The translations under genes were made by a program, and so were the position numbers. Shown here piece after piece: positions 2,914 through 59,777 of a stretch of 64,000 nt of DNA (position 1 is its first letter; each line of letters starts with the position of its first letter). The notes under the pieces were generated by a model. It had not been told where the DNA came from, did no database searches, and saw only the letters and a list, made by a program, of their open reading frames with translations. The DNA lies in the NCBI RefSeq assembly GCF_006345805.1, contig NC_043013.1:43028001-43092000 (forward strand), written 5' to 3'. The stretch is from Octopus sinensis (lineage: Eukaryota).

Positions 2914-5900
2914 GTTGGTTTTCATGTCATCTTTCCCACTGCTTTGATTCAAAGATGTCATTAGTTAAATGATCTTACTTCTCGGTAACAGATGTTGACA
3001 TCTTGACTGCAACTGGGGTCTACAACTGCCAATGGGAACAGATTTTCTTAAACCTTAAGTTAACCTGTTTAAGTAGGTTTTCTTCAGAGAACATCCTCTC
3101 ATGGCTAATCGTGAGTTATTTTAAAAGAGAATGTGTGTATGTGGTTTGGTTGTTAGATTCAGGTTCAAACTACTAATTACAGCAATGATAGACATTTTCC
3201 TAGTCTTCTTCATAAAACATGAGAATCTGCTGTAATGATTGTACTTTGGAAATACTATTAAACACATAGCCTGGGCTGTAATTGATCTGAACTTATCTGA
3301 GGTATATTTCCATTAGTTATTCATGTTTGAGACAAAAAGGAAAACCCACGTTTTCTCCTGGGTCATTTCTTAGTCTCTTAAAAGGTTGATGTAAATTGTT
3401 GTGAGTGTACATGTGATGGATGATACCAATGAGGATGTTTGCTAGGTAATGTTGCGCTAGTATTCATCATATTTTAGATGGTTATTGTAAACTATAGTTC
3501 ATGAACTAAAAAGGGCCAGCAAAGTGTTCGGGGGTTGGCTGGGGTCAGGAGTCTCAGTTGAAATATAATTGCACATTCTCAGAGTCAGATGTTAAGTGAT
3601 TACCAAATTACTGACGCATTCTCCACAGGAACAAATTAACCAATATCAAGAAGCCAAATTATCTGTTTTGACGAAGATGGCAACTACAATTGAAGCAGAG
3701 GAGATGGAGGAGGGATCCTGAAGTTCCCAAGAATAAAATGACAGGACTTAGTCAATGTTAGATAATAAATGTTTTTGACAAGATACAAATTGGAAGATGT
3801 TTGGAAAGCAAAAAGTCTGAGTTTAAGATTCCTGAATTCCAGCCATGTTCCTGCTAAATTAGCAGTTAATGTTTAGGGAATTCCACATTTCTTGCTGACT
3901 TCTTTTTAGCTTCATGAAGACTATAGTTCTTGTATTTTTGTACATTTTTCTTCATAAGTGTTGGTCACATGTTGCTGATGTGTGGTGTCAGTTGTTAGCT
4001 AGTTTAGGTAATCCATTTATTGTCTTCACCAATATCTTCATTTGAAATTAGTGTCTTTTGTATTCATTTATTCCTGAAAGGGGATAATAAATGACTATTA
4101 CAAAAACACATCTTTGCAGCAGGTAAGCTTCTTATATCATTATGCTTTCCCCTATATGCAATATGATGTTAATATAAATATTTATATTACTACATAGTGT
4201 GTGGAACGTCTATGCTTTGCTAAATATTAGTTATTCTATTGCATCATTCTTTCTCCCTTACATAATAAGAATTTCTTTAAGAAGTGCATATGTATATGTC
4301 TATATACATACATACATAGCCCTTATTTGTTTTCTTAAATATATATCTCTACAAATCTATTTAGAGTTAGGGTCCTAGAATGGAGTGATATTGTTTGACT
4401 TTGCTAATTATATTTAATTCATATGAATGATGAAAAATTGTTCCAATACACTTCTATGACATTCATTAGTGATAATCATCATTCTGATATTTCTCAATGA
4501 TTGTTTTATTGTTGCAGTTCTTCAGCTTCTAAACCCAAAGTTATCAAGAATATGAGAAGTAAGTTTTTTTTTATTATTCTACATGTTCTGAATCTTATTA
4601 TTCACTAAGCCTTTGTTTTAAATGTGAGGTATTTGAAATCTTAACCTTGAAGGGTCAGATTTCCTGGTAATCTTTCCATATTCATTTGTTTCTGTACTTC
4701 ACAGGCAATGACCAAAACAGTCGGAATTTGTGGGTCAGTGGTCTTGCCACAAGCACCCGTGCTACAGACCTTAAAGTGCTTTTTACCAAATATGGCAAGG
4801 TATGTTGAATAATATCTGTTTCTTATATTTCATGTAATTTGTTACTAATCATATTTATTACTAATTAGTACTTAGATTCACACTATGCTAGTCTAGAGTG
4901 TGTTTACACTCTAAACAACTCTCTCTTCTCCAAATGTAGTCACTGTCAGACCATCAGCACTCTCTGCTTTGTGTGTGGTTGTCCACAACACAAGCTCAAC
5001 ATACCTTCCCTGCTCACTTCAGGTTAGCCGACTGGTTAGAATTCCACCAGTTCTACACTATTTTCTTTGACACATGTACTTGACTCTGGACCCATCAGAG
5101 ACAGCTAGGTAGGTGACAGAAAACATACTCTTTGGCATGTCCCTTTATATCCCATGCAAAACCAAAATTGTCTCGGGTCCTCTAAGTGGTTCAGTCTTAG
5201 CTGTGTTGCAGCATTTCATGCAAAGCATACAGCCTGAAATACTTAGAGAAAAAGCACTCTTACAAACAAGGCAGCTTTCATGTAACATGAAATCTGCAAA
5301 ACTATCTGAAATGCAAAGGATTCTGCCATGTATGGTACAACTGGTAAGCTTTCTCATTTCCAAAAGCAACTACTGATCTTGTTTGTTTTCAAAACTGATT
5401 TGAGTCATCTTTGCAAAATCCTTCTCCTTTCCACTTCTCTGGTTCAGCAACCAGTACTCTTCAACAGGAAGCTTCTACAGGGATTGTTTACTTTGTATCC
5501 ATCTCTGCATTGCATACTCTAAGTAAATCTTCTCTCAAAACTTGTTTTCCCCTCCTCCACCACGTACATGCCAAATGCAAAATCTCTCCCAATCACCTCA
5601 AAACAATAATGCCTTTAGCCATGAAATCTGTAGCTAACCCTATCCTCACCAAACTCTTCAGTTTGACTCCATATATCCCAATCTTTGGATTCTTGTTACA
5701 ATATGTCCCATTTGCCGGAAATTACTCCAACCATCATCTTATTGCACTCACTTTCAATTTGTTAGAGATGATAGTCATAAATAACCTTCTCTAACACTCA
5801 GAATCCATCTCTCCCCTTGATGACCTCCACTACTGCTTATATAAAGCCAATCTACTGGAGACATGTTCTTCTTCATTCATCAGTAGGTTGGTAAGTTTTT

Positions 5901-8900
5901 ACTCTTGGAAAAATACCTGAAGAAAACAATGTTGCAAAGCATTTAACTGTGATTTATGTGCCCTAAATCTCTGAGTAAATCTAACTGCCTGTGGGTTCTT
6001 GGATTGGAGGCTTCCTGTCAAGGTGACTAGAGCTTCAGTATGTACATGTCTATAGCTCTCTCAGACTTACATTCCATTAACTTCTGGTTTGCTTCATGGT
6101 TCAGTTTTGCCCTCTGTCTATACATCAATGACCTTTTTTCAGTCACCTCCAGCAATACCTACCACCCTTATGTAGATGATACTTTTCAATCATCCCTGAT
6201 CATTTACTCCAAACGTCATCCACATTCACCACATGCCAAACCTGCCCTGACTTCTTGGAAACATTCTTCAACAAAGGTGTGTTAGTTTTGACACATTCAA
6301 CAGACACTCTCCACTTCCACTCTGGTTTCTGAATATGAAGCACATGCAGCAACTGGACTGTAGAGTGCTCCTTCCAAATATTAGGCCTTGCTCTGGCTAA
6401 GGATCTCTCTTGGTAAATCCATATCCTCAAAAGAGCAAGGACTTAATCACAAATTCTGTCTTCTTTAGGACCAGGAAATACTTCAGCTGTTAGCCTTCTA
6501 CATAGCTCAGGTGAAACCTCCTATAGTGTACTCTTCTCACATCTGTGTCAGTACTGTTGCTATTCATAAACCACATCCAACTGAAATGGCACTCAACTGA
6601 ATGGTATAAAGACTTTTGTCAACATACTCAGGCTTCCAGTTGACGGACCTGCTGTCTTTTCTCTCTTCCCTTATCTATGCCTTCTGCATTGGAGTCTGTT
6701 CCTTGGAACTGGTTTGTCTTGTGCCACCCCCACTTTGTGATGCTTGATTCTCTTTTATTTTGTTAGTGACATTGTGTGTACACTCTACTTTAAAGCCTAT
6801 AATAACCCCCTGTTCTTAGTTCTTTTTCCCAGAATGTTAGCTTTCTAGAATCCTTTTCTGGCAGATGACATTTGCAACTATTCAAGCAGAATATCACTGA
6901 TAGATTTTCATGGTCTTAGAGAATTTGGAAGGGACCATGCACACTGACCAAACTAATTTTTAAAAATCCTTTATGTAAAGAGTTTTACTTAAACTCTATA
7001 TAAAACATTTACTACTTTTAATCTGCAATATCATTCTCTTTTACTCTTTTACGTGTTTCAGTCATTTTGACTGTGGCCATGCTGGAGCACTGCCTTCAGT
7101 CGATCAAATTGACCCCAGGACTTATTCTTTGTAAGCCTAGTACTTATTCTATCGGTCTCTTTTGCTGAACCGCTAACTTACAGGGATGTAAACACACCAG
7201 CATCAGTTGTCAAGCGATGTTGGTGGGGGACGGACACACAAACATATACATACACATACATATATACGACGGGCTTCTTTCAGTTTCCGTCTACCAAATC
7301 CACTCACAAGGCTTTGGTCGGCCCGAGGCTGTAGTAGAAGACACTTGCCCAAGGTGCCATGCAGTGGGACTGAACCCTGAACCATGTGGTTGGTAAGCAA
7401 GCTACTTACCACACAGCCACTCCTGCACCTATTTTCAGAAATAATTTATTAGTATTGGTAATATTGATGAGTATTGGGCTGAATAATTACCTATGTAAAT
7501 TTTTGTGTTTAAAATTTAATTTAGTTTTTGTTTTTGTCTACATCAGGTTGTTGGTGCCAAAGTAGTGACAAATGCACGAAGCCCTGGTGCTCGATGTTAT
7601 GGTTTTGTAACTATGTCTTCTTCACATGAAGCTTCTAAATGTATTCAACATTTTAATCAGACTGAACTGCATGGCCGTATGATATCAGTTGAAAGGGTGA
7701 GTTATCCAAAGTTCATTATTTTGTTTACAGACCCATTTATCAGCTACTGAATTAAATGTTATCAGCATTTCATTGTCAGCTGTTAGAAACATGCTCAGCA
7801 TTTGAAATAGATATCGGTTATCTTTAGAGTAAGGTTGAGATCATCAATTATGGTCAGTTATTGAGAAAAATATGTGTTGTTCAACTCTTGGAGGTGCAAA
7901 CCCAGGTCATCAGTTCATCAAAGCCCTTCAAGATCCTCCTGGATAGTCAGTATGTCCTTAATGGGAACCTATTAGACACCAGTGTTGGTGAGCAGTCCTG
8001 TACACATCAACCAGCTTAGTATTTTCATAGCATGTGTGTTAAGGATCACTGAAATGTTTTTTTAGTTACAGTACACTTGTTGGGTTTGTGCCACTCTGAT
8101 ATTGTAAAGCTGACTGACACTAAAGCTGTTGTGGCAGTAATTCAGAATGATGTCTTTTAATTTGTGTTCTGTTTAAAAAGCCATTTGTAAGGTCCAGCCA
8201 CAATAGTACCAGTTCTCTTGTTGAAGGTTTCTCTGATCAACTGATTAACCATACTGGAATGCTCTAGACACCCTGATGTCCTTTAAGAACTGAAGTATCA
8301 GCATAGAAGTTCAATTGGAGGTAATTTGTCAGGTGGCAGAAGAATAATGTCCTTTCAACACCCCTTCTTCACACTACCACTGATGAGCTACCCCAATCTT
8401 CTTCCATATTACCTTCAGGGCTTTACTAAATTCTTTGGAAGGTATTGATCATCTTCTGGGGCTTAACCTGCCCTTTACCTTCTTGACCTTTTCCTAGACC
8501 TCTTTCTAACTTGGTCCTTTGTTGTCAAATTCCAGAGCTGGTGAAGATGGATTGCTCAAGGGCTTTAAGTGGCTTATGTCGTGGTCCCTGAACTCACTTC
8601 TTAAAGTAACTCTCATATGACTCGATCGTGCCTCTGGAGCAAGTGATTTGACCCTTGCCCCAGCAACTATTTTGTAAACCCACATGTGTTTGCTTGAAAA
8701 TTAGCTTGCTTCCTAATCCATTGTCTCCTTTGCTATTCAGCTGTAAGGGCCATGAACTTTTATTGAGAGGTCTCCTTTCCTCCCCTCTTGCCTTTTTGAG
8801 CTGCTATCTCAAGCTCTTGAGTTCCCATTTAAGCTTATGGATTGTATTAGCCCTGCTATGTATGATGTAAAGAAGTTTCACTGCTTTCTTCTCCAACCTG

Positions 8901-11900
8901 AATATCTTAACTGCTAGACTGATGATGGTCATAGTTATGATGTGTGTGTGAATGTATAACGTGCAATGATATCAGTAATAATCTATTGGTAAAGAGATGT
9001 GTGATGATAAACTGTTGAATGTATGTATGTGTTTGAAGGTAGTACAAATACATCATTAATAAGGGTTTAGAGTTGAGATGTCACAAATAATATTTCCCGT
9101 TTTTTTTAGGCTAGAAGAGAACCTAACACTAAAGCACCAGTAACAAAAGCAGGAGAAAAAAAAGTAGAAAAGGCTGAAGTAAAGAAAGATGGTATGACTT
9201 CTTCCAGTGTTTCATATTTGTACCCTAAACAGAATTTGGCTCTAGAATTCCAATGCAGAGACTCTATAGGTCATTTGCATTGAAGTTAGCTGGACTTAGT
9301 GTTTCATGTTACTAACCAAGTAATTAGTTTAATAAAACCATTGGCATTTCACAATTACTTAACAGTAGTAATAGTATTCAAAGAATCATAAATATCAGGT
9401 GTGACTGTGTGGTAAGAAGTTTGCTTCCTAACCACATGGCTTTAGCTTCAGTCCCACTGTGTGGTACCTTAGGCGAGTGTTTCCTACTATAGTTCCAGGC
9501 TCACCTAAGCCCCATGAATGGATTTGGTAGGCAAAAACTGAAAGAAGTCTGTTGTACATATAGTACATATATAAACATATCCGTGTGTTTGGGTGTGTAT
9601 GTTGCTGTCTCCTTGCCTTGACTTTTTGTGATAGCTGTAAAGAATTGTTGCTATGATGTAAACAGTTTGCTGTGTTTCCAATCTTCCATGAAAACATGCC
9701 TGGTCATTAGAGTATATTACTGTACTTGGAACCAGATGAGGGTTCATGGCAGGAAGTGCATCTGTCCATAGCAAAATCTGCCTCAACTAATTTCCTGTTC
9801 TCCATGCAATCATGGAAAAAGTGGACATTAAAAACTATGATGATAATGATTAGTTGACACTTATAGGCAACTCTGTATTGCCTTGAAGTCTCTAGATTGT
9901 GATAGTGTCTCTATGTGTGTTTGTGCTGTTTGCAGAAAAAAAAGATGGTGATAAGAAAGTTGAGAAGAGAGAATCAAAGAAAGATGATAAAAGCAGGAGA
10001 ACGTCCAGCAGAAGAGATGACAAAAGACATAGTAGCAGGAGCAGCAGAAGTCGTCACAAAAGCTCAGGTCAGTCTTACTAACGGTCGCATGTGTGTGTGT
10101 GTATGTGTGTTTTGTCCTTGTGCAAAAGCTTGGGTCAGTCTTACTAAAGGTCACGTGTGTGTGTGTTTTGTCTTTGTACAAGAGTAGCTTGTTCTGAAGA
10201 GAATATGGTACTGAAATAATTTCCTGATTTGTGCTGGGTTCGACTGGCAAGATTTATAGAAATACATTTACTGGTGGATCTTCAGTGCCAGTGTGGCTTT
10301 GTAGTTATGCGTGGTACCTTGGGCTAGTGTCTTCTGCTTTAGCCCTGAGATGCCCTAAGCCTTGTGAGTGGATTTGGTAGATGGAAATTGAAATAAGCCT
10401 ATTGTATATGTTATACCATTGTCTTGGTGTCATAAGATGGTTGTAAAGAAGCATTGCCATTGGACAGATGAATTTGTTGGTTTTAAGTCATCTGTGAAAA
10501 ATTTGTGTGGTCATGGGAAATATCACCTTGCTTGAAAATAGGTGAGAATTGGCTACAGGAAGAATATGGACATTAAATGATGGTGATAACTGATTCACTA
10601 TTTCAGATAAATCTCATGCAACTACACCAAATAAGAGTACAGCTGAACCAGCTACAAAAGAAGGCTCTGAGAAAGGTGCAGAGCCTGCGGCAGCAGCAGG
10701 CGCCAAGGAGAAAGCTCCCAGTACAACAAAACCTAAACCACGAGGGCCTGGTGACCCTTCTGTCAAGAAAGAGATTTTATCATTTGATGAAATAAAAGTA
10801 AGTACAATTTTATGTATGTGTTTTTAATGTAGCGAAAGTGTGTAGTTGAAGTAGAATAAGATAAATAATTTCACCTTGAAACTAGAGTGGCTAATACCAC
10901 TTACTTGACCCTAAATTTAAAGTGTTTATCATCCCTGATATCATCTTGAAATCTTGAGATAGAGCTCCCCTACCTTAAAACTGGTCATAACTGGTGTGTT
11001 AGCTTTGAAATGCATTGTCTTCCAGTGAAGGTCTTAGTGTGTAGCACGCCTGAGATGTAACCTAAAGAAATTGTTTAAATTATGCAGATTGATTCAGATG
11101 TGACTCTGCAATAGTCACAATAGTTGTGGTGGTAATTGTGGTGGCTGTTGCAGTATAGAATATGTAAAGAAATTTCAAATCAGATTAGGTGGAAGAAGGT
11201 CAATTATTTCATTAGAATAGTGGCACTGTGACTGTGGGTGTAAGACACTGGACTACTGGCAACAAGAGTAGAAGTTCAAATCTTTCTACATCTGTAATAT
11301 TGTGTCCTATTTGGTGTAATAAATCATATAATTGTACTTACTCAAGTTTGCTCAACTGATAAAATTTATTCCAATCTACTTCAAGGTTGAATGCTTAGCA
11401 AGAGGAGGGAAATGTAGCTCCTAGTCTAGTGTGGAAAAATTATGTAAAACGAGAGATTTTTTTTTTATATTGGGATATAAGGGTATTATGTTGTCAGGGT
11501 AGCAGCTTTTAGTGCTATACAGAACTGCTAAAATCTATGAGATGTTTGTATTAAATTATTGTGGTATTTCTATTTGCCATATTATATGTCACTGACTCTT
11601 TGTATCATATCAAGTCTTATTTTGTATGGTTATTTACTTTTAAGATGTTTTCTTTGTTGATTTTATGTTTGTTTTATTCTTTGCTAATAATTATTCTCTT
11701 TTCACATTCCATTCATGAAAAAAAAAAAATCCCAACCAAATTTCTTGACAAAGGAAAGAGAAAGACGGCGTTCACGTCAGAGACAAAAAAATCGTAGGGT
11801 ACAGGATAAGCGTCGGTTGAAAAATCTTGGCCTGGCTCGTATGCGTCAGCAGGATGTGGTATGGAAACAGAAGGAGGAGGCGAAAAGATTGGGAAAAGTT

Positions 11901-14207
11901 AGAGAGAACATAAGGTTTGTTACAAGTGCATTCACATTTAAACTGTTTAAGGCAGAACAGCATGATTTTGTGAGAAAGAAGTTTACTTCACACCTCCATG
12001 ATACCAAATTCAGGGTCATTCTGCATCATATTGGACAGGTATTTCCTACCATAGTCTTAGGTTAGCCAATGCTTTCATAGATGGAAACTATGTTAAAAGC
12101 TGTCTGAAGGCCCAATCCTATTTTTGGTGGTAGAATTATTTTGTTGTCTTGTTTAAGACTACATCTGATCCTTAGGTGCCTTTAACAGAGTACACGCTTT
12201 ATCAAACATTCAGGCCTGGTCTCTAATCTGAGGATTACTTCTTCCCTTCTTCAAATTGGTCTTGGCAACACTGAGAAAACTCTTTAAATATTGCTATATT
12301 TTAAAAACTTAAGTATTTTTATGTTTTGAATAGTTTTTTACATAGTAATTGTGGATTAGAAGGAATTTGGAAATTTTAGCAATAAGAGAGCAAAGTCATT
12401 AAACTATCATTATCATCATCATCATTACTTAACATCTGCCTTCCACACTGGCATGGATTGGATGGTCAGGTAGGAGCCTGCACCAGACGTTTGTGTCTGT
12501 TTTGGCACATATTTTACAGCTGGATGCCCTTCCTAACACTAACCACCCAGCAAAGTGGACAGAAATGAATGGTAAAAATGTTAATGAATATATGAGAAGG
12601 AAATTAAAGATCACAATAAATAAGATGAATTCAGTGATATATTTATACTCTTTGTTCAAATTGCTTGATATCTTTAGTTTTAAGATCTGATAACCCAATG
12701 GATTAGTTGGACACCATTGTAATTTTGGGATAAAGAGAGGCTGAAATATTTGGAGTAGCTTTCCTCAATACCCTTTCAAAACCAAAGGAAGAATTGAACA
12801 TAGCAGTGAAAGTTAAAGAAATGATTGTCAGACAAACAGTTCCCCCTTAGTAACCTTACTTTTGAGTTGTTGTTTAGCTATCTTGCAGGCCTGTGATCAA
12901 AGGCCTTACAACTGTAACTCCCCCCTCCAATTTCTTTGTTATCTATAGGACTATATTATCTATGTATTTTGTGTTTTAAAATGAGAGGATGTTATATGAT
13001 AGCTGCACATGGTACTTATTAAGTGATTCATAAATGTTTACGACTAAAATGTCTTTGTCCAGCTTACAGTGATGTTAGCCTATTGTTTAGCAGCCTGATG
13101 CTTTTATTATTTTGTCCACCTGACTTTGCTTTCTTCTGCTTACCTTTGTGGTTTCTGTATAGATTACTCAACTACATCTGACCTTCCTAATATTTAAGGT
13201 CCATGAAGTGACATTTGGATAAATACGTAATTTCCCCTACATTCAGAAGAATGTCTCTTGGGTATTCTTGCAGAGTAACAGGTGTCAAGTTGGTGTGTGT
13301 AGGCAGGGATATTTCTTTTTTATTTTCTGTTGAAATTCTCTGTTGTCTTTATATTCTTTCGCACTTTTCAGATTAGAGAAAATGAAATTGGAAAAAATGA
13401 AACTGGAAAAAGAGAAACTGTTAAGATACAAAATGGAAAAAGAACTTCTTGAAATAAAAAGGCGTGATGTAGAGATGCATTCAGCTGAGATGTTACGGTA
13501 AGTGAGACAGATTATGTTGTTACTGTTACAGAAACTGAAGAAGGAGGCCATAAGATTGGACAGTGTTAGAGAGAAGATAAGGTTTGTTAAAAGTGCATTC
13601 ACATTGAAACTGCTTAAGACAGAATTGCATAATTGTGTGGGTAAGAAGTTTCCTTCACACCTCCATAATATCAAATTCAGTGTCATTGTGAATCATTTTG
13701 GATGGGTGTTTTCTGACATAGTCTTGGGTTGACCAATGCTTTCATAAGTGGAAACTAGGCGATCTTTTGATATGAGAACTGTGTTTGTGACTTTTTAAAG
13801 CACGTGTATTTGCTTGTTTCTGAAGAAGATTGTCACTTTTTATTTTTTTACATATGTGGGGTGAGGGGAAAGGGGATCTTTTGAAGTCGGCATGAAAGCA
13901 AGGGACTGAGAGAGCGCAATTGGATCAGGGAAGTTCTTTTCAAGTTGGCATGCCGTATGTGTGTGTGTGTTTGATGGGGTGTGTGAAAGAGAAAGTGTGG
14001 TTTGTATGTGAAGTTCTTTTGTTAGTGTGTGTGAAGAGACACAGAGTAATGTTGCAGGTGTGTGTGTATGTGAGAGAGGTTATGTATGTATGTATGAATG
14101 GCTTCAGTGACTACGCTCTTCCACAGAAAGGAACAAGGAGAGAAAAGAAAATAAAGAATGTGTAGTGGCTAGTGATCTATCATGGCACATTTATGTGTGT
14201 GTGTGTG

Positions 14208-14239
<32 letters not shown>

Positions 14240-17200
14240 GATACATCCATTTATGCATATATATATATAGATACATACATATATATCTATATATATGTGT
14301 GTGTGTGTGTGTGTCACTGAAGCCATTCATACATACATAGAGAACCTCTCTCTCTCTCTCTCTCACATACACACACACACAAACACACGGCATGCCAACT
14401 TCAAAAGAACTTCCCCGATCCAATCTTGCTCTCTCTGTCTCTTTTGCTTTTATGCCAACTTCAAATGATCCTCTTCTCCCCACCCCACATATATGAAAAA
14501 AAAATTTTAATTTTTACGGAAAGCGACAATCTTCTTCAGAAACATAAACAAATACATGTGCATTGTTTTTGACAACTATAGTACTCATAACGTAATTTAG
14601 CCAGAAACTATGTTTAAAGCTGTCTGAGGTGGGACCATCCCTGTTTTTGCTGGTACTATTATTGTGTTGTTCTCTTTAAGAGCACATCTGATCCTTGGAT
14701 GCCCTTTGCAGAGTACACACTTTTTCAAGCTTTCAGTCCAGGTCTCTAATCTAAGGATAGCTTCTTCCCTTCTTCTAATCAGTCTTGGGGACGCTGAAAA
14801 AACATACCTTGGGTTCTGCTCTTCCTTTTATAAGCCACAAAACCATTTTAAAGATCTTTTAGATAGTAATTGTGATTTATGAAGAATTTGGAAATTTTCA
14901 CAAAAGCAGGGCTAAGACATTTTAAATGAATGGTAAAAGAAAGAAAAAAAGTAAAGATTAGAGCATGTAAGATATATTAAGTGGTTTCTTTTTTTAACTA
15001 TTAAGTAACGTGTAAATATTGGGTTCAAAATTTTATATTCTCTGTTGAGGCAAGTGAGAATCAGAATCAAAATTAAAATCGATCAACATCAATGGAAATT
15101 GTAGCTGTGATACCAGTGCCGGTGGCACGTAAGCGAACCATCTGAACATGGCCGTTGCCAGCCTTGCCTGGCCCCCGTGCCGGTGGCACGTAAAAAGCAC
15201 CATCCGATCATGGCCATTGCCAGCCTCGCCTGGCCCCAGTGCCAGTGGCACGTAAAAAGCACCATCCGACCGTGGCCGTTTGCCAGCCCCGTCTGGCACG
15301 TAAAAAGCACCCACTACACTCACGGAGTGGTTGGCATTAGGAAGGGCATCCAGCTGTAGAAACATTGCCAGATCAAACTGGGCCTGGTGCAGCCTTCTGG
15401 CCTCCCAGACCCCTAGTTGAACCGTCCAATCCATGCTAGCATGGAAAGCGGACGCTAAATGGTGATGATGATGTTTAAATTGTATTATCTCTTGATAAGT
15501 TTTTCTTAAGATTTAATAATCCACTGGTTGGGTTGGATACCATTGTAAATTTTAGCCTATGTTTCGGGATAAAGAGAAGCTGACATATTTGGAGCAGTTT
15601 TTCTCGATACCCTTTCAAGAGATGATTATTAGACAGTTTCTCTGTTCTTGTAGTGAACTTTTCTTTGTATTGTTATCATTCAGGCCTATGATCAAAGGCC
15701 TTATAAGTTTAACTGTCACGCCCGCCCTTTTTGTGGGGAGGGTATCTGTAGTACTATATTATTTATGTATTTTGTGTTTGAAAATGATAGCTCCACATGG
15801 TACTTATTAAGTGTTGGGTGAATCTTTATTTAAGGCTGAAGTCTCTTTGTCCATCTCACAGTGATGATAGTTTGTTGTTTAGCAGACTGATACTCTATCT
15901 ATTATTTTATCTACGTAACTCACTTCCCTTTTCCAAGGGGTGAAATGTGTTTTTAAAGGTGACAGATACTTAATTTCCTCTAGTTTCAAAAGAACGTTTC
16001 TTGGATATTCTGGCAGAGTAACATGTCAGGGTAGATACAAGTTGATGAGTATAGGCAAGGATTGTCAGTTTTATTTTTATTTTCTGTTTAAATTCTTAAT
16101 GTTATCTTTATATTCTTTCATATTTTTCAGGTTAGAGAGAATGAAATTGGAGAAAATGAAGCTGGAGAAAGAGAAATTATTAAGATACAGGATGGAAAAA
16201 GAACTTCTGGAAATGGAAAGGCGTGATGTAGAGATGCGGTAAGTGAGATAAGTTATGTTGTTACTCTTATGCTGTGAACTTAATGATGAATTTTTATCCG
16301 TAACATAATGTAAATATTGGGTTAAGAACCCTTTTGGACAGGAAACACCAAAAGGCTGCTCTTGAGCATGAACCTACATCTGTAAATTTGACAGATATTC
16401 TACCATTGTCCGACAGGCAGCCTTTGACTTTTTCTATCCCAAAACGTTTTGAACCCAATATTTACATGTCATTATTTTGTAGCTTCATCTTCTTCGAGCT
16501 CTACAGATAAGAATGAATTATTTCACATCCTCTCAAAGTTTCTAAATACTTATGATAAACTTATTGCTTTTTTTTTCTTGGTGTCTTTGATACAACCTAT
16601 TTGATTGAATTATATTTTATTTACCCTTGGATAATTTCATGTTTGTTTTGTTTGTTGGATTGGGGATTAGGATGTAGGACTTTTCCTAATTGTGGAAAGT
16701 AATCTCAAATGGGATTCTTGTGTATGTAAAGATGTTGTAATGCTGATCTGTTGATCTCATCATAGAGGAAGCAAAACAATGAACCAGTGGTGTTCACATC
16801 ACTTCTGACCTAACTTATCCATTGGCCTAAACACAACCATTCATCATCATCATCACATAATGTCCGTTTCCCTGCTGGCATGGGTTGGACGGTTTCACAG
16901 GAACTGGCCAGTCAGAGAGCTGCACTAGTGTCCATTTGTCTGTTTTGGCATAGTATCTATGACTGGATGCCTTTCCTAATGCAACCACTTTACAGAATGT
17001 ACCAGGTGCTTTTTACGGAGCAACAACATGGATGCTTCACATGTGGCTCTAGCACAGGTGCTTTTCAGGTGGCAGTCACATTAATAAAAAAAAACAGCAA
17101 CAAAACCACTTTGTGGAAGCATGTATGTGTTGTAGCAGCTTGATCTGCTAGCAATAACAGCCAAATCGCCATATTCCACTGCTCATGACTGAAATGAGTA

Positions 17201-20200
17201 CTTTATGTTGTAGATCAGTATTGACACAATGAATGACAACAGCAGGTCTACAAAGCAATTTTATATATTGACATGAAATATTTACTGTGATGGTCTTTAG
17301 CTACTTAGTAGCAAGAAATTAAGTCCAGTAACTGTTTTGGTATGTCATCGCATAATCTTGATTCTGGGGCTGTTTATTGCCTTATTTTTGTTATGTGGAT
17401 ATCAGCTCATTGGTGTTGGGTTTGTTTAGCCCTAAGTCAGCTCAGATGGAGCAGACCTAAAGGTGGTCGAGTTTTGTTTTTCTTCTCTCAGACATAATGT
17501 TGGACTACATTAGCCAGTGCATCCAACATTTTATTTTTCTCTCAAGACAGTTGGGGATAATTTGAGGACATTTTGCATGCTGGTTCTGGTGTTTGAGGAC
17601 TGCATAAAAGCAACCTTGTTATTGAAACTGGTGTCCTGGTGGTTGATTGTTGAAAGTTAAGGTTGTTTACTATCTTTATCTTATCCTTTAGCTGCTTGTC
17701 ATTCAATACAACTGTTCTTTACTTGATTTTGCTGGTTTTTTGTTTAATATCAGGTTAAATGAAATGAGACATCCTGCAAAAAGACCTCATGATCGAAACC
17801 GTCTTCGTGATGAACTCTGGGACGAACCTAAACGATCCAGGATGATCGGTTCTGGCAACCACTCTAGATTTGAACTTCCATTCCAGAATGAGTCACGGTA
17901 AGTTGTGAGTGGTGAAGTTGATATGTTGTCATTGATTCCTTATTACCTGGCTAGTGTTTTAAATTAAAGTTTCATTTGCATTTCACAATATCTTTGGCCT
18001 GTTTTATATGTGTATGCTTAGAGATTATTGAGGCTAAATTTAACAGTTTGTACAAAAAGCAAAGAAAATACTGTCCCATCGAAAAATAAAAGTATTTTTA
18101 AAAAATCAAAAAATACCAACTAGATTATATCTGCAAGATAACTCTTCAGTTAGAGTGGCTGCTCTCATCCTCCACCACAGCCTCAGGACAGCTCTGAAAC
18201 CTGGCTCTGGTATTCCTCACTGACATGGATGATTTGACAGGACCTGATGGAATGGAGGACTGCATCATGCTCCAGTATCTGTTTTAGCATGGTTTCTTTG
18301 AACTAAGTGCTTTTTTTCATTCAACTGAGCGGGACCACAGTAAAGGAGGAGGCAACTGTATGCGAAGTGACGAGAGATTAAATTATATTTAAGGTATATA
18401 ATCCTGTTTGTAAATGTGAGGTGTGTGTCTTAACTCAGTCAATAGCTTCAATTTTGACAACAAAGTGAACAAAGGTATTCTAAATACTATACAAAATCAA
18501 TTCTGATTTATAGAAATTGTCGTTGCTTTGAGAGAAGGTAAACCATGACCTGCTGGTAATTGCTAATGATTCTGAATGAGGAAGAGATACAATCTCAAGA
18601 ACCAAGAGTTCTCTGAAATTGTTACACCATTAAGGAAAAGGCAGTCTGCTTTCTCTGCAAGCAAGAGGACAGCTCTAGACATTTGTTTAAGCTTCAGTAA
18701 GCATCAACATAATAGTTGTCGTATCTTATTGTATATTGGATACTTATCTAATTTCATCTTTCTTTTTCTCTTTCAGCTATAATGAATATGAGAACACTGA
18801 TTATGGTAGAAGGGACAGTAGATCTTTGGAAGGTGGAAGTCGCTATGATGAACGTAAAGAAAGAGAAATGATGCGAAGGGAAATGGGTCCTTTCCGAGAT
18901 ATTCGGGTCAGAGATGAAAGACGAACTGAAGACCGTTCTCGAACAGATGAAAAACTCAACAGGTAATGTGTGTTTTTAAACCTGACTTTTTTGTTTTTGA
19001 TTTTGTATCTTTCTACTGCTCACTATTGTTCTACACACTAGCTGGTATCTGGCTGTTGTTACAAACCTTATCCTTCATATCAGTCAAAGTTTATGCACAC
19101 ATTAGCCTCTGTGCAGGTTAGTTTTGGTGTATACACCAATCTCTGTTTGAGGTTAATGTTGGTGTGTATGCCAGTCTCCATATGGGTCAGTGTTGATGTG
19201 AACAAGGTTCTGTATAGGTGAAAGTTGATCAATTGCTCAGGTTGTGTACATTGTCCCTTGTACAGTATGTTGCTAAACACTTTAATTTGTTAATTTTGTA
19301 TCTGGTTTACCTCCACATCCAGGATGCCCTTTGAATTAAGAAGAGATATGGGACCAAGTGGAGAGCCTGATAAAAGATATGTTGGTTCCGATCGAGGACG
19401 TGATAATGACCGACGAAGTATATCAGCTCACAATAGATTGGGCAGGGTGAGAAATTCTTTTGGTAAGCTTCCACTCACTTCTTTTGATCATTTCTCTCTC
19501 TCTCAAGTAAAATTTCACCCACTTCTTAAAGCATTCTGTAGCTGTCCTTCTCTTAACTCTGTAGCACTTAAACCACTAATATTGGGCCCAGATATTTTAC
19601 TTGTCTTATGTTCAACTAGATCTGGCCTCCCACACTTCCCCTGTCATTCTCAAAATAAACAATCACTTCATCAAAATCTTGAAGCTACAAGATAATGCAT
19701 GACTAATTCAAAACAATGTGAATGAAAAAGCATTACTTTCAACAGAGTAATCTGAATGCTAAAGAGTTAAGCCCTAGTCTTCTCCATATCTCTTGTCTTT
19801 TCTTTTCATCAATATTCTCTTCATTTTATTTTGACATTAATTCCTTTCAGTCTTTATTTTTCATATTCGTGTATTCATTAGTGCATTTTCTGCCTTCTTC
19901 CTTTCAGGTGGTGGACCAGACCAGAGATCTTCTTGGGGTTCTGGCAGTGTAGATAGGAAAGTGGACAACTGGTCCCACATGCATGGAGACATGGACCAAC
20001 CCAGTGAACCATGGCTTGGTGACCCCATGGAGAAAACGGGGCGTGATGCCAGTGGGGCATTTGTAGACAATAGCAGACCCGGTAATAGTGGTGGGATGGG
20101 GCAGAACTTGGGATCTGGTAACACATTTGGCAACTCTCAGTCACATAGTGGGATCATGATGGTTACACGTGGTGGTGGAGGTGGTAGTGTCAGTAATACG

Positions 20201-20257
20201 AGTGGACGTATGCAAGAACCTCGTTTTGATGCTTACAGTATTATGGGATCTATGTGA
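2319..20257 (+). CDS. SAFB: SAFB/SLTM-family scaffold attachment factor, copy A (5' exons incl. SAP domain lie upstream of the window)
   Basis: join(2319..2913,4518..4558,4705..4799,7547..7696,9110..9191,9936..10067,10607..10797,11754..11914,13372..13497,16131..16238,17754..17897,18777..18962,19323..19462,19908..20257). All introns are GT-AG, phases are compatible and the frame stays open to TGA at 20255-20257. [52 protein letters not shown] is the SAFB-family signature. Confidence 0.92.
2336..2518 (+). repeat. Coding minisatellite, 4 x 45-48 nt ([15 protein letters not shown])
   Basis: Four tandem in-frame units; copy B has one. Confidence 0.85.
4081..4122 (+). other. Copy A candidate 42-nt poison (PTC) cassette exon
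   Basis: Polypyrimidine tract + aag acceptor, cag|gtaagc donor; in-frame TAA TAA when joined to 2913; same-size counterpart at 41563..41604. Confidence 0.6.
4518..4558 (+). CDS. SAFB: Copy A micro-exon ([13 protein letters not shown])
   Basis: ttgcag acceptor, gtaagt donor, phase 2 to 1 fits neighbours; homologous to 42866..42900. Confidence 0.85.
4705..4799 (+). CDS. SAFB: Copy A RRM exon 1 (RNP2)
   Basis: [26 protein letters not shown]; cag/gtatg splice sites. Confidence 0.95.
4890..6850 (+). mobile_element. CR1/L2-group LINE relic (RT)
   Basis: Decayed RT motifs [23 protein letters not shown] with many stops and frameshifts; boundaries approximate. Confidence 0.6.
7036..7430 (-). mobile_element. 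tRNA-derived SINE, family 1 (full length)
   Basis: Reverse complement of A-box/B-box head gcaggagtggctgtgtggtaag...gggttcagtccc, central microsatellite, tail gactgaaac...aaaagag; many copies in the window. Confidence 0.85.
7547..7696 (+). CDS. SAFB: Copy A RRM exon 2 (RNP1)
   Basis: [50 protein letters not shown]; cag/gtgagt. Confidence 0.95.
9110..9191 (+). CDS. SAFB: Copy A post-RRM Lys-rich exon
   Basis: [27 protein letters not shown]; tttag/gtatga; phase 0 to 1. Confidence 0.85.
9395..9850 (+). mobile_element. SINE family 1 head with a different (gat)n-tailed 3' half
   Basis: Same tRNA-like head; 3' end gtggacattaaaaactatgatgat. Confidence 0.7.
9936..10067 (+). CDS. SAFB: Copy A Lys/Arg/Ser-rich exon
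   Basis: [44 protein letters not shown]; tgcag/gtcagt. Confidence 0.85.
10300..10590 (+). mobile_element. Degenerate SINE, same type as 9395..9850
   Basis: gccttgtgagtggatttggtagatggaaa core; ends just upstream of the 10607 acceptor. Confidence 0.6.
10607..10797 (+). CDS. SAFB: Copy A linker exon ending [10 protein letters not shown]
   Basis: tttcag/gtaagt; open frame; ends phase 0; ILSFDEIK resembles the SAFB pre-coiled-coil motif. Confidence 0.85.
11754..11914 (+). CDS. SAFB: Copy A coiled-coil exon A
   Basis: [54 protein letters not shown]; 161 nt like 50463..50623; acceptor has a weak pyrimidine tract. Confidence 0.75.
13372..13497 (+). CDS. SAFB: Copy A coiled-coil exon B
   Basis: [41 protein letters not shown]; ttcag/gtaagt; symmetric phase 2-2. 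Confidence 0.85.
13532..13581 (+). CDS. Copy A candidate alternative exon A' (duplicated 3' part of exon A)
   Basis: [17 protein letters not shown]; acceptor gttacag formed at the duplication junction, donor gtttgt as in exon A; phase 0 to 2. Confidence 0.45.
13758..14602. mobile_element. Merlin-like non-autonomous foldback element
   Basis: Long degenerate inverted arms starting GGCGATC; 8-bp TSD ggaaacta/agaaacta; absent from the unduplicated intron near 12085. Confidence 0.7.
15040..15475 (+). mobile_element. SINE family 2 with internal ~55-bp minisatellite and (gat)n tail
   Basis: Core gttggcattaggaagggcatccagctgtagaaac...catgctagcatggaaagcggacgctaaatggtgatgatg; other copies at ~12410, 16845, 21805, 28910, 31750, 47090, 50128, 57870. 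Confidence 0.8.
16131..16238 (+). CDS. SAFB: Copy A duplicated coiled-coil exon B'
   Basis: [36 protein letters not shown]; ttttcag/gtaagt; 108 nt, phase 2-2. Confidence 0.8.
16309..16466. mobile_element. Small MITE-like palindrome
   Basis: Perfect 15-bp inverted ends tgtaaatattgggtt/aacccaatatttaca, extending imperfectly ~50 bp. Confidence 0.55.
17754..17897 (+). CDS. SAFB: Copy A exon ([23 protein letters not shown])
   Basis: cag/gtaagt; homologous to 52502..52648. Confidence 0.88.
18777..18962 (+). CDS. SAFB: Copy A Arg/Glu/Asp-rich exon
   Basis: tttcag/gtaatg; homologous to 58208..58408. Confidence 0.88.
19323..19462 (+). CDS. SAFB: Copy A penultimate coding exon
   Basis: [18 protein letters not shown]...; ccag/gtaagc; homologous to 58601..58737. 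Confidence 0.85.
19908..20257 (+). CDS. SAFB: Copy A last coding exon (Gly/Ser/Met/Asn-rich tail)
   Basis: tttcag acceptor; open to TGA; ends [13 protein letters not shown]. Confidence 0.9.
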
Positions 20258-21300: not shown

Positions 21301-21949
21301 TGCAGGATATTGATGCTATCATCATTCAACAGATACAGCCCAGTCCAGAGGATACAAGTCAGTTCACACTGTCATTGTTATTATCATTCAATGTCTGTTT
21401 TCAGTACTGGCATGGGTTGGATGGTTTGACAGGTTCAGAATGCCCTGGGTGCTTTTCTCGTGACACTGGCACTAGAGACGTCACCAACTTGCAAAACAAA
21501 ATAAATAAAAGAAAAATCCCCCTCAACTGAGTAGGAGTGTGTTTGAGAGAAGGGGAGGTGGCTTTATGCCAGATGTTGAAGGCTAAAATATGATAGAGGG
21601 ACAGACGTCTTGCTGTAGAGGAGATAAATGGCCATCTCACATTACACTGGGCAACAAGAATAAAAAAAACTGTCCTGAACCTGGAATATTTCAACAAATT
21701 CCTAAGTGAATTTGCCTGCTAAATTCAAAAATAACTTGAGTTCTTCTCTATAAGGTTTAATTTCTGACTTGACCTGATAGAATAAGTATTTTATTCATAC
21801 AAAAGGCATCATCATCATTGTTTAACGTCCGTTCTCCATGCTAGCATGGGTTGGACGGTTCGACCGGGGATCTGGGAAGCCAGAAGGCTGCACCAGGCTC
21901 CGGTCTTATCTGGCAATGTTTCTACAGCTGGATGCCCTTCCTAAAATAT

Positions 21950-24566: not shown

Positions 24567-59777
<35,211 letters not shown>

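Follow-up and report, generated by a model that had tools for sequence, protein, structure and literature searches.

An old tandem exon duplication in an octopus SAFB-like gene: a probable lengthening of the helical rod and a putative exon-like relic

Exons 2 and 3 of alpha-tropomyosin exclude each other sterically, the branch point lying too close to the upstream donor. The mechanisms that enforce mutually exclusive exons, namely steric hindrance, frame or NMD, U2/U12 splice sites and competing RNA structures, have been surveyed with their criteria, and a spacing of less than 50 nt is the general criterion for steric exclusion (PMC5740500). The proteins SAFB1, SAFB2 and SLTM present a common architecture, which comprises a SAP domain, an RRM, a charged helical 'coiled-coil' and Glu/Arg-type region, and a Gly-rich C-terminus (10.1101/2022.12.28.522114).

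The window analysed here, a stretch of 64,000 nucleotides from Octopus sinensis, contains two gene copies, A and B, whose best database matches (in Octopus, Argonauta, arthropods and vertebrates) are named SAFB1, SAFB2 or SLTM. An RRM (PF00076, E=3.7e-12) was detected on the composite copy A protein, in the exons at 4707-4802 and 7544-7696, and the charged helical region of this protein is followed by the Gly-rich C-terminus expected for a SAFB/SLTM member. The SAP domain (PF02037, E=1.1e-10) is encoded in the first of the coding exons of copy B (24576-24716); the corresponding exon of copy A falls outside the window, on its upstream side. The octopus SAFB-like genes stand in a tandem array, of which copy A is a fast-evolving member, and their products combine SAP and RRM domains with a long charged helix and a Gly-rich tail. 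Domains and names of the best matches thus link copy A to the SAFB1/SAFB2/SLTM family, from which the octopus paralogue differs in being lineage-specific, tandemly arrayed and fast-evolving, and in having a helical region rich in Lys, Glu, Met and Leu (MKLEK repeats) with one module more. No paper linking SAFB to octopus biology was found in the literature searched, the sole paper with both terms being a breast-cancer review.

The exons and repeats of the region are listed in Table 1. The end of exon U is homologous to the ILSFAQIK and LTFNQIK of other SAFB proteins. All checked splice sites of exons U, A, B, A', B' and N of copy A are AG...GT. Exon A has a weak acceptor (57% pyrimidine) and the non-consensus donor AAG/gtttgt; exon B has a strong acceptor (83% pyrimidine) and the consensus donor gtaagt; and exon B', which carries an in-frame 18-nt deletion relative to B, has an equally strong acceptor (83% pyrimidine) and a consensus donor. 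The first 26 nt of the spacer between B and A' correspond to the donor-proximal intron sequence that is conserved after every B-type exon. In copy B, only a 319-nt intron separates exon B from exon N (52502-52648). A single B exon is found in copy B and in the canonical paralogues of O. sinensis, O. vulgaris, O. bimaculoides and Argonauta, and this is the ancestral state.

Table 1. Positions of exons, duplication units and repeats in the window (a slash marks the exon-intron boundary)
Feature	Position	Strand	Description
Exon U, copy A	10607-10797	+	ends SFDEIK, phase 0, donor AAA/gtaagt
Exon A, copy A	11754-11914	+	161 nt, phase 0 to 2, encodes a basic stretch
Duplication unit 1	11857-13523	+	1,667 nt: last 58 nt of exon A, A-B intron, exon B, 26 nt of next intron
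Exon B, copy A	13372-13497	+	126 nt, phase 2 to 2, 42 codons
Spacer, B donor to A' acceptor	13498-13531	+	34 nt
Duplication unit 2	13524-16264 (end approximate)	+	2,741 nt
A' (putative exon), copy A	13532-13581	+	50 nt, phase 0 to 2, AG and GT, open frame
Palindromic element	13797-14564	.	about 770 nt, TA/TG microsatellite core; intron of unit 2 only
62-nt tandem repeat (three copies) and dispersed SINE-like repeat	15035-15473	.	unit 2 only
Exon B', copy A	16131-16238	+	108 nt, phase 2 to 2, 36 codons
Exon N, copy A	17754-17897	+	next constitutive exon, ends FQNESR
Gly-rich tail	19907-20254		copy A C-terminus, ends YSIMGSM
Exon A, copy B	50463-50623	+	unduplicated comparator, carries the 19-mer common with A'
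Exon B, copy B	52072-52182	+	single, 111 nt

The tandem duplication that had been claimed for the 3' part of exon A, the following intron and exon B is confirmed by a direct repeat between units 1 and 2, with matching blocks of 83% (234 nt), 80% (172 nt) and 88% (138 nt) identity. The introns of the two units are 80.2% identical and hold independent insertions; unit 2 is longer because of later insertions. The duplicated part of exon A is smaller than the 'half' originally stated, since it comprises only the last 58 of 161 nt, about a third. The A' acceptor, supposed to be a product of the junction, does owe its T-rich tract to the junction, but its AG lies in sequence derived from exon A, where it aligns with a GG (tgttacAG in A', tggtatGG in exon A). 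Relatives of the repeats at 15035-15473 occur at 47.1-48.3 kb, 21.8 kb, 28.9 kb and elsewhere. A scan of 10.5-18.2 kb against Rfam returned no match. Open frames of about 50 codons past the donors of A and A' (11715-12065 and 13502-13732) were considered as alternative C-termini and rejected, because 18 of 49 residues differ between both frames and copy B has stops there.

An assembly artefact, the explanation on which the original prediction would have fallen, has a negligible probability. The two copies differ by 12-25% and have not received the same repeat insertions, and the same layout recurs in two other genomes, those of O. bimaculoides and of a more distant octopod represented by an independent Logan contig from four samples (L003). 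In paralogue Z of O. bimaculoides (contig L001), B is located at 9991-10116 and is followed by a 34-nt gap, A' (10151-10200) and B' (11835-11951); in L003, B, the A' relic and B' are all present. The duplication in copy A is therefore old and real.

All positions, splice dinucleotides, phases and stop codons given in the original prediction are correct. The frames of the region were as first described: the paths A-B, A-B', A-B-B' and A'-B' are all open, and the 50-nt A' with its gttacag acceptor, its phase of 0 to 2 and the 34-nt gap before it was placed exactly. Beyond these four paths, the A-N and A'-N joins are also in frame. The B-A' join reads CGA AAC TGA and is out of frame, as claimed, and the A-A' join reaches a stop too. 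A cryptic donor at 13469 (GAT/gtagag) would permit a fifth in-frame route, from a truncated B to A', via a 63-nt intron. The proposed steric exclusion holds for B against A', whose join is forbidden both by the 34-nt distance, found in the window and in paralogue Z and below the limit of about 50 nt, and by the TGA stop; it does not hold for B against B'. These two exons have lengths that are multiples of three and are separated by an intron of 2,633 nt, so that of the two enforcing mechanisms checked, steric spacing and incompatible frames, neither applies to them. A-B-B' is open, and the mutual exclusion of B and B' is not supported.

B and B' are 88% identical, both are open, run from phase 2 to 2 and are bounded by AG and GT, and an in-frame indel is their sole length change; common origin, phase, frames and splice sites are those of a tandem exon duplication. 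As judged from their substitutions, both behave as coding exons under constraint. Between B and B', 7 synonymous and 4 non-synonymous changes were counted (P=0.0035 in a binomial test, the neutral non-synonymous fraction being 0.78 by simulation), a comparison that, like all selection tests on B, B' and A', concerns very short exons. The Nei-Gojobori dN/dS was 0.07-0.18 across B-type exon pairs, but dS is inflated by transition bias at two-fold sites and was not accepted at face value, for which reason the binomial test was relied on instead. The indels of B-type exons are all in-frame (18, 15 and 9 nt), and, relative to the O. bimaculoides orthologue, amino-acid changes are found at 3 of 42 positions in B and at none of 36 in B'.

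The only annotated proteins found with B are two O. bimaculoides models, XP_014784460.1 (A-B-B'-N) and XP_014784463.1 (B-B'-N), and both read B and B' in tandem, which argues against exclusivity. In XP_014784460.1, intron sequence ahead of exon A is read as coding and exon U is left out, which indicates that the model is partly ab initio. In XP_052829886.1, B' is joined to N, and a protein search with P0001 returned no longer isoform of the O. bimaculoides orthologue. On the basis of these gene models, B and B' are probably included together in O. sinensis. AlphaFold2 predicted A-B-B' as one continuous helix (residues 12-153, pLDDT >90), in agreement with the claim that intragenic duplication doubled a helix-coding module. 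No regular heptad pattern was found on reading the helix sequence of A-B-B', the model being that of a long charged helix; a coiled coil that tunes oligomerisation, as suggested for copy A, would be one possible form of it. The added helix length presumably matters.

A' presents a different picture. Its exact sharing of sequence with copy B was reproduced: the 19-mer GAGGCCATAAGATTGGACA occurs only at 13544, in A', and at 50586, in exon A of copy B, with 0.01 chance matches expected, and is absent from exon A of copy A. This 19-mer was considered as a sign of selection on A' and rejected, because the relative-rate comparison is not significant (with copy B as outgroup, 5-6 changed sites in exon A and 2 in A' since the duplication) and outside the 19-mer A' and copy B diverge freely. 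Between the window and paralogue Z, which is not the true orthologue of copy A, the introns are 83.5% identical and A' is 88% identical, with 6 of 50 nt different (5 non-synonymous changes and 1 synonymous). The AG, the GT, the 50-nt length and the open frame of A' are kept in these two lineages, whose divergence is 16.5%. Conservation is unusually high in the 52 nt on either side of A' taken together (2 differences, P=0.005); their upstream part is kept after every B-type donor, and the first downstream bases are the donor motif inherited from exon A. In L003, the acceptor and the first 14 nt of A' are lost. The acceptor in the window is 57% pyrimidine with no match to yUnAy, against 83% for those of B and B', and the use of A' needs the skipping of exon A and of the strongly defined exon B. 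Neither an A' peptide nor the alternative junctions appeared among the matches of the word-indexed and exhaustive representative protein searches, a weak negative because the proteins of the window species for this gene are absent from those matches too. A' appears to evolve like neutral DNA between the two lineages and is most likely an unused pseudo-exon, a silent and slowly decaying relic.

Taken with a probability of about 0.6, the reading that we favour is that copy A would encode a longer helical rod, A-B-B', and carry A' as a relic pseudo-exon. A 1.67-kb tandem duplication, with breakpoints inside exon A and 26 nt into the intron after exon B, supplied B' as a further full copy of exon B. 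Because exons of the B type begin and end in phase 2 and are a multiple of three in length, this symmetry meant that the extra copy could be spliced in at once with the frame kept. The main product would be U-A-B-B'-N, whose helical rod would exceed that of the single-B paralogues by about 36 residues. A' was copied without an acceptor of its own, and owes its look of an exon to the junction AG and to a weak donor inherited from exon A; at 34 nt from the strong B donor, it would be occluded whenever B is recognised.

Other readings use the same exons differently. B and B' may be real and used as cassette or alternative exons, with A-B, A-B' and A-B-B' coexisting, so that ordinary exon skipping would vary the helix length and A' would be irrelevant. 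This has an appreciable, if minor, chance of being correct: both exons are constrained and skippable in frame, the current annotation of O. bimaculoides has, for the orthologous gene, an 'isoform X2' that starts at the Met in B', and tandem duplication of exons is known to give rise to alternative exons (PMC5740500). However, the intron flanks, with identities of 80.9% upstream of B and 77.9% downstream of B' against 83.5% for the average intron, are unlike those of typical regulated exons; acceptors are strong and donors consensus on both exons, and both available models with B also include B'. A splicing switch between U-A-B(-B') and U-A'-B', in which the 34-nt spacing and the TGA force splicing to take either B or A', and the isoforms differ in helix length, the A' form being without the basic N-terminal part of exon A, is unlikely. 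Its geometry and frames are exactly those of the original prediction, steric exclusion is a recognised mechanism (PMC5740500), and A' has its AG, GT and open frame in both the window and paralogue Z, conserved flanks, and the working donor of exon A, AAG/gtttgt. Against this stand the neutral look of its substitutions (5:1), the deletion of its acceptor and 5' end in L003, the need to skip two exons, one with the strongest splice sites of the region, its absence from every database protein among the matches, and the fact that B and A' are not homologous alternatives. That A' has been co-opted in some lineages, where recognition of A and B would be suppressed in favour of U-A'-B', or that its sites are a decoy tuning the B donor, is very improbable; in that case the 34-nt spacing would make the choice all-or-none, and a co-opted A' would give a product without one helix module and without the basic, NLS-like part of exon A. 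What copy A shows is exon duplication of an ordinary kind rather than an established splicing switch.

As in tandem exon duplications that lengthen a repetitive or helical region, the whole symmetric exon B was duplicated within its intron context, B and B' keep frame, splice sites and constraint, and the annotated products read both serially; unlike the usual case, the breakpoint in copy A lies inside the upstream exon and left a truncated A' with a fortuitous acceptor, and in the octopus case duplications of three sizes lie one within another, namely the 15-nt MKLEK repeat, the 1.67-kb unit and the gene as a whole. B and B' resemble the exons of mutually exclusive clusters in being adjacent, homologous, of the same phase and of similar length (126 and 108 nt), but differ from them in the long intron between, the lengths in multiples of three and the gene models that include both (PMC5740500). 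The likeness to alpha-tropomyosin is that splicing from the B donor to the A' acceptor is impossible, and that the join would also yield a stop codon; on the other hand, A' is putative, is not a homologous alternative to B and has lost its acceptor in another octopod, and its productive path needs two exons skipped.

If the A' path were real, it would represent a newly born, sterically enforced splicing choice, and the present evidence leans against it. A breakpoint inside a neighbouring exon may leave an exon-like relic, which can be mistaken for an alternative exon by sequence inspection alone. Copy A would offer a clean and datable case of a symmetric exon that was duplicated and absorbed at once into a helical rod, within an undescribed and fast-evolving expansion of SAFB-like genes in octopods.

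The window (38% G+C, no Ns) is cephalopod DNA and carries two tandem copies of a SAFB-like gene on the same strand. The top database hits bear the names SAFB1, SAFB2 or SLTM; by Pfam, copy A encodes an RRM and copy B a SAP domain. Most copy A exons share about 90–97% identity with O. bimaculoides proteins, which points to a related Octopus species rather than O. bimaculoides as the source. An extra copy A coding exon, rich in Lys, Asp, Ser and Arg, lies at 9935-10078, downstream of the post-RRM exon (9110-9190) and ahead of exon U, and was exposed solely through alignment to the O. sinensis canonical protein.

Inside copy A, a direct repeat (11857-13523 and 13524-~16264) bears out the tandem duplication of the original prediction, whose sequence observations all hold, small corrections aside. 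The 3' part of exon A is duplicated, not as a half but as its last 58 nt. A', a partial copy of the end of exon A, has the expected length and follows the B donor after a 34-nt spacer, and it shares an exact, unique 19-mer with exon A of copy B. The junction, credited with creating the A' acceptor, supplies the T-rich tract upstream but not the AG, which lines up with a GG within exon A. The four proposed paths (A-B, A-B', A-B-B' and A'-B') are stop-free on translation, and A-N and A'-N are further in-frame joins. The B-A' join is out of frame as claimed (CGA AAC TGA); a cryptic donor at 13469 (GAT/gtagag) makes an in-frame join of truncated B to A' possible, with a 63-nt intron.

Features of the two SAFB-like genes and of the duplicated units in the window
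Feature	Position	Length	Remark
Copy A	from before window start to about 20.3 kb		
Exon U	10607-10797		AG and GT flanks
Exon A	11754-11914	161 nt	AG and GT flanks
SINE-like element	about 12405-12546		unit 1
Exon B	13372-13497	126 nt	AG and GT flanks
A'	13532-13581	50 nt	AG and GT flanks
Palindromic element, microsatellite core	13797-14564	~770 nt	unit 2, A'-B' intron
62-nt tandem repeat (three copies) and SINE-like element	15035-15473		unit 2
Exon B'	16131-16238	108 nt	AG and GT flanks
Exon N	17754-17897		AG and GT flanks
Copy B	SAP exon 24576-24716; last coding exon ends near 59.8 kb		

Over their introns the two units match at 80.2% (812/1,013 aligned positions), and each gained its own insertions. 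Copy B presents the unduplicated layout (exon A, 1,448-nt intron, single exon B, 319-nt intron, exon N). Every other SAFB protein recovered likewise has just one B module; among them are two proteins of Argonauta hians, the canonical paralogue of O. sinensis, O. vulgaris and O. bimaculoides, and a further paralogue of O. bimaculoides. The duplicated layout recurs in Z, an O. bimaculoides paralogue at locus L001 (B 9991-10116, 34-nt gap, A' 10151-10200, B' 11835-11951), with introns 83.5% identical to those of copy A, and in L003, a Logan genomic contig from a more distant octopod (four samples), only about 73–75% identical to the window. Together, these comparisons indicate that the duplication is derived and old, and they rule out an assembly artefact.

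The arms of the palindromic element, about 77–95% complementary, flank a TA/TG microsatellite and would form a long pre-mRNA hairpin; a partial relative is found at 25567-25749. The SINE-like repeat of unit 2 is dispersed in many copies across the window in both orientations, with relatives at 47092-48319, 21807-21944, 28907-29108 and 16841-17017 besides that of unit 1, and Rfam gives no match for it. Only Z has a transposon-like insertion in the A'-B' intron (L001 10740-11365), with terminal inverted repeats TTTTAAAACGGGGGCGCCAG...CTGGCGTCCCCGTTTTAAAA and an inner run of telomere-like CCCTAA repeats. The 5' half of Z (L001 1-8141) matches the 5' region of copy B at an orthologue-like 85–94%, and its 3' half (9072-16112) resembles copy A (72–87%). 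A 930-N assembly gap separates these halves, which reflect either a chimeric gene formed by unequal crossing-over or a scaffolding misjoin.

B and B' keep AG/GT and an open frame in three of three genomes, and length differences among B-type exons are all in frame (18 nt in B' of the window, 9 nt in B' of Z, and 15 nt in copy B, whose exon B has one MKLEK unit fewer). Their dN/dS is 0.07–0.18 (Nei-Gojobori). Since transition bias inflates dS, counts were also set against a simulated neutral non-synonymous fraction of 0.78, and the 7 synonymous and 4 non-synonymous differences between B and B' of the window depart from it (P=0.0035). Against the O. bimaculoides orthologue, B has 3/42 amino-acid changes and B' 0/36; exon A is much more diverged (about 12/53 and an indel). 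B and B' also have the strongest splice signals of the region (acceptors 83% pyrimidine, donors gtaagt); the acceptors of A and A' are 57% pyrimidine, and their identical donor is non-consensus (AAG/gtttgt). By their frames and substitutions, B and B' are both coding exons. Each contains about 2.8 copies of a 15-nt tandem repeat, AAAATGAAACTGGAA, encoding MKLEK (13379-13420 and 16135-16178), so duplications of three sizes sit one within another: 15 nt, 1.67 kb and the whole gene.

AlphaFold2, run with no alignment, predicts an unbroken helix that begins at the end of U, spans A, B and B' and reaches the start of N (residues 12-153, pLDDT >90). This region is annotated as coiled coil in human SAFB proteins (10.1101/2022.12.28.522114). 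On inspection the MKLEK pentads follow no regular heptad pattern. The predicted helix may form a coiled coil or stand as a single charged helix, and so the proposed coiled coil that tunes oligomerisation stays an inference.

Tandem exon duplication is well established, as is its link to mutually exclusive splicing. Among the recognised ways of enforcing exclusive splicing are steric hindrance (<50 nt from donor to branch point), incompatible frames that lead to NMD, U2/U12 incompatibility (PMC5740500) and competing RNA structures (PMC6071210). The interpretation of the locus as alternative, exclusive modules is partly supported: steric hindrance and a stop codon hold for B and A', but neither steric nor frame incompatibility applies to B and B'. 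B and A' are not homologous alternatives, and A' is only a candidate exon. The use of B and B' as cassette or alternative exons appears unlikely, though it deserves some weight; their intron flanks show no more conservation than introns on average, giving no hint of regulated exons. The gene models read A-B-B'-N in the copy A orthologue (XP_014784460.1) and B-B'-N in Z (XP_014784463.1), and XP_052829886.1 starts at the Met of B', joined to N. The first, which lacks exon U and runs into intron sequence upstream of exon A, is thus partly ab initio.

That A' acts as a splicing switch is improbable. Its AG, GT, length and frame persist in two lineages, and the 52 nt flanking it show just 2 differences (P=0.005). 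However, the 26 nt upstream are conserved after every B-type donor and probably serve B, the stretch downstream opens with a donor motif that came from exon A, and a productive A' path must skip exon A plus the well-defined exon B. A' of the window and A' of Z differ at 6/50 positions (5 non-synonymous, 1 synonymous), a pattern fitting neutrality (P=0.61) better than B-like constraint (P=0.04), and their 88% identity is near the intron average. In L003, a 24-nt deletion takes the acceptor (ctgttacag) and first 14 nt of A', and a further 25 nt are deleted past its donor; the B' exon farther on is intact. Rooted on copy B, exon A has 5-6 changed sites against 2 in A', a non-significant difference, and the shared 19-mer would be retained ancestral sequence. 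A' thus looks like a relic. The frames of A (11715-12065) and A' (13502-13732) stay open about 50 codons beyond their donors, to the same ...IVLG stop, probably by chance, since these stretches differ at 18/49 residues in a neutral pattern and copy B has stops there. We consider an A-B-B' product with a relic A' the most probable reading (about 0.6), and the locus is best classed as a case of ordinary tandem exon duplication that lengthened the helical region, with the pseudo-exon as a by-product.

Isoforms of the canonical paralogues (P0125/P0140 versus P0141/P0142, and P0147 versus P0134) differ by one Lys at the U-A junction (FAQIK-K-ERER or FAQIK-ERER), which looks like a tandem (NAGNAG-type) acceptor; copy A lacks a second AG at this distance.

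SAFB-like genes have undergone a lineage-specific expansion in octopods, to which the two tandem copies belong. A single chromosome of O. bimaculoides bears at least six of these genes (XP_014769865-9, XP_014784460, XP_014784463, XP_014784467), and several occur in Argonauta hians; a literature search found no paper linking SAFB with octopus biology. The A-B-N region of the canonical paralogue is 100% identical, one residue excepted, among O. sinensis, O. vulgaris and O. bimaculoides, whereas the arrayed copies diverge fast. The O. bimaculoides array member XP_014784467.1 (P0127) carries a long NSEGMGYNQ repeat and three or four tandem N-type modules (...FQLPFQNQSW, ...FERSFRNQPW, ...[10 protein letters not shown], ...YEPPFQNESY), so intragenic module duplication has recurred in the SAFB-like family.
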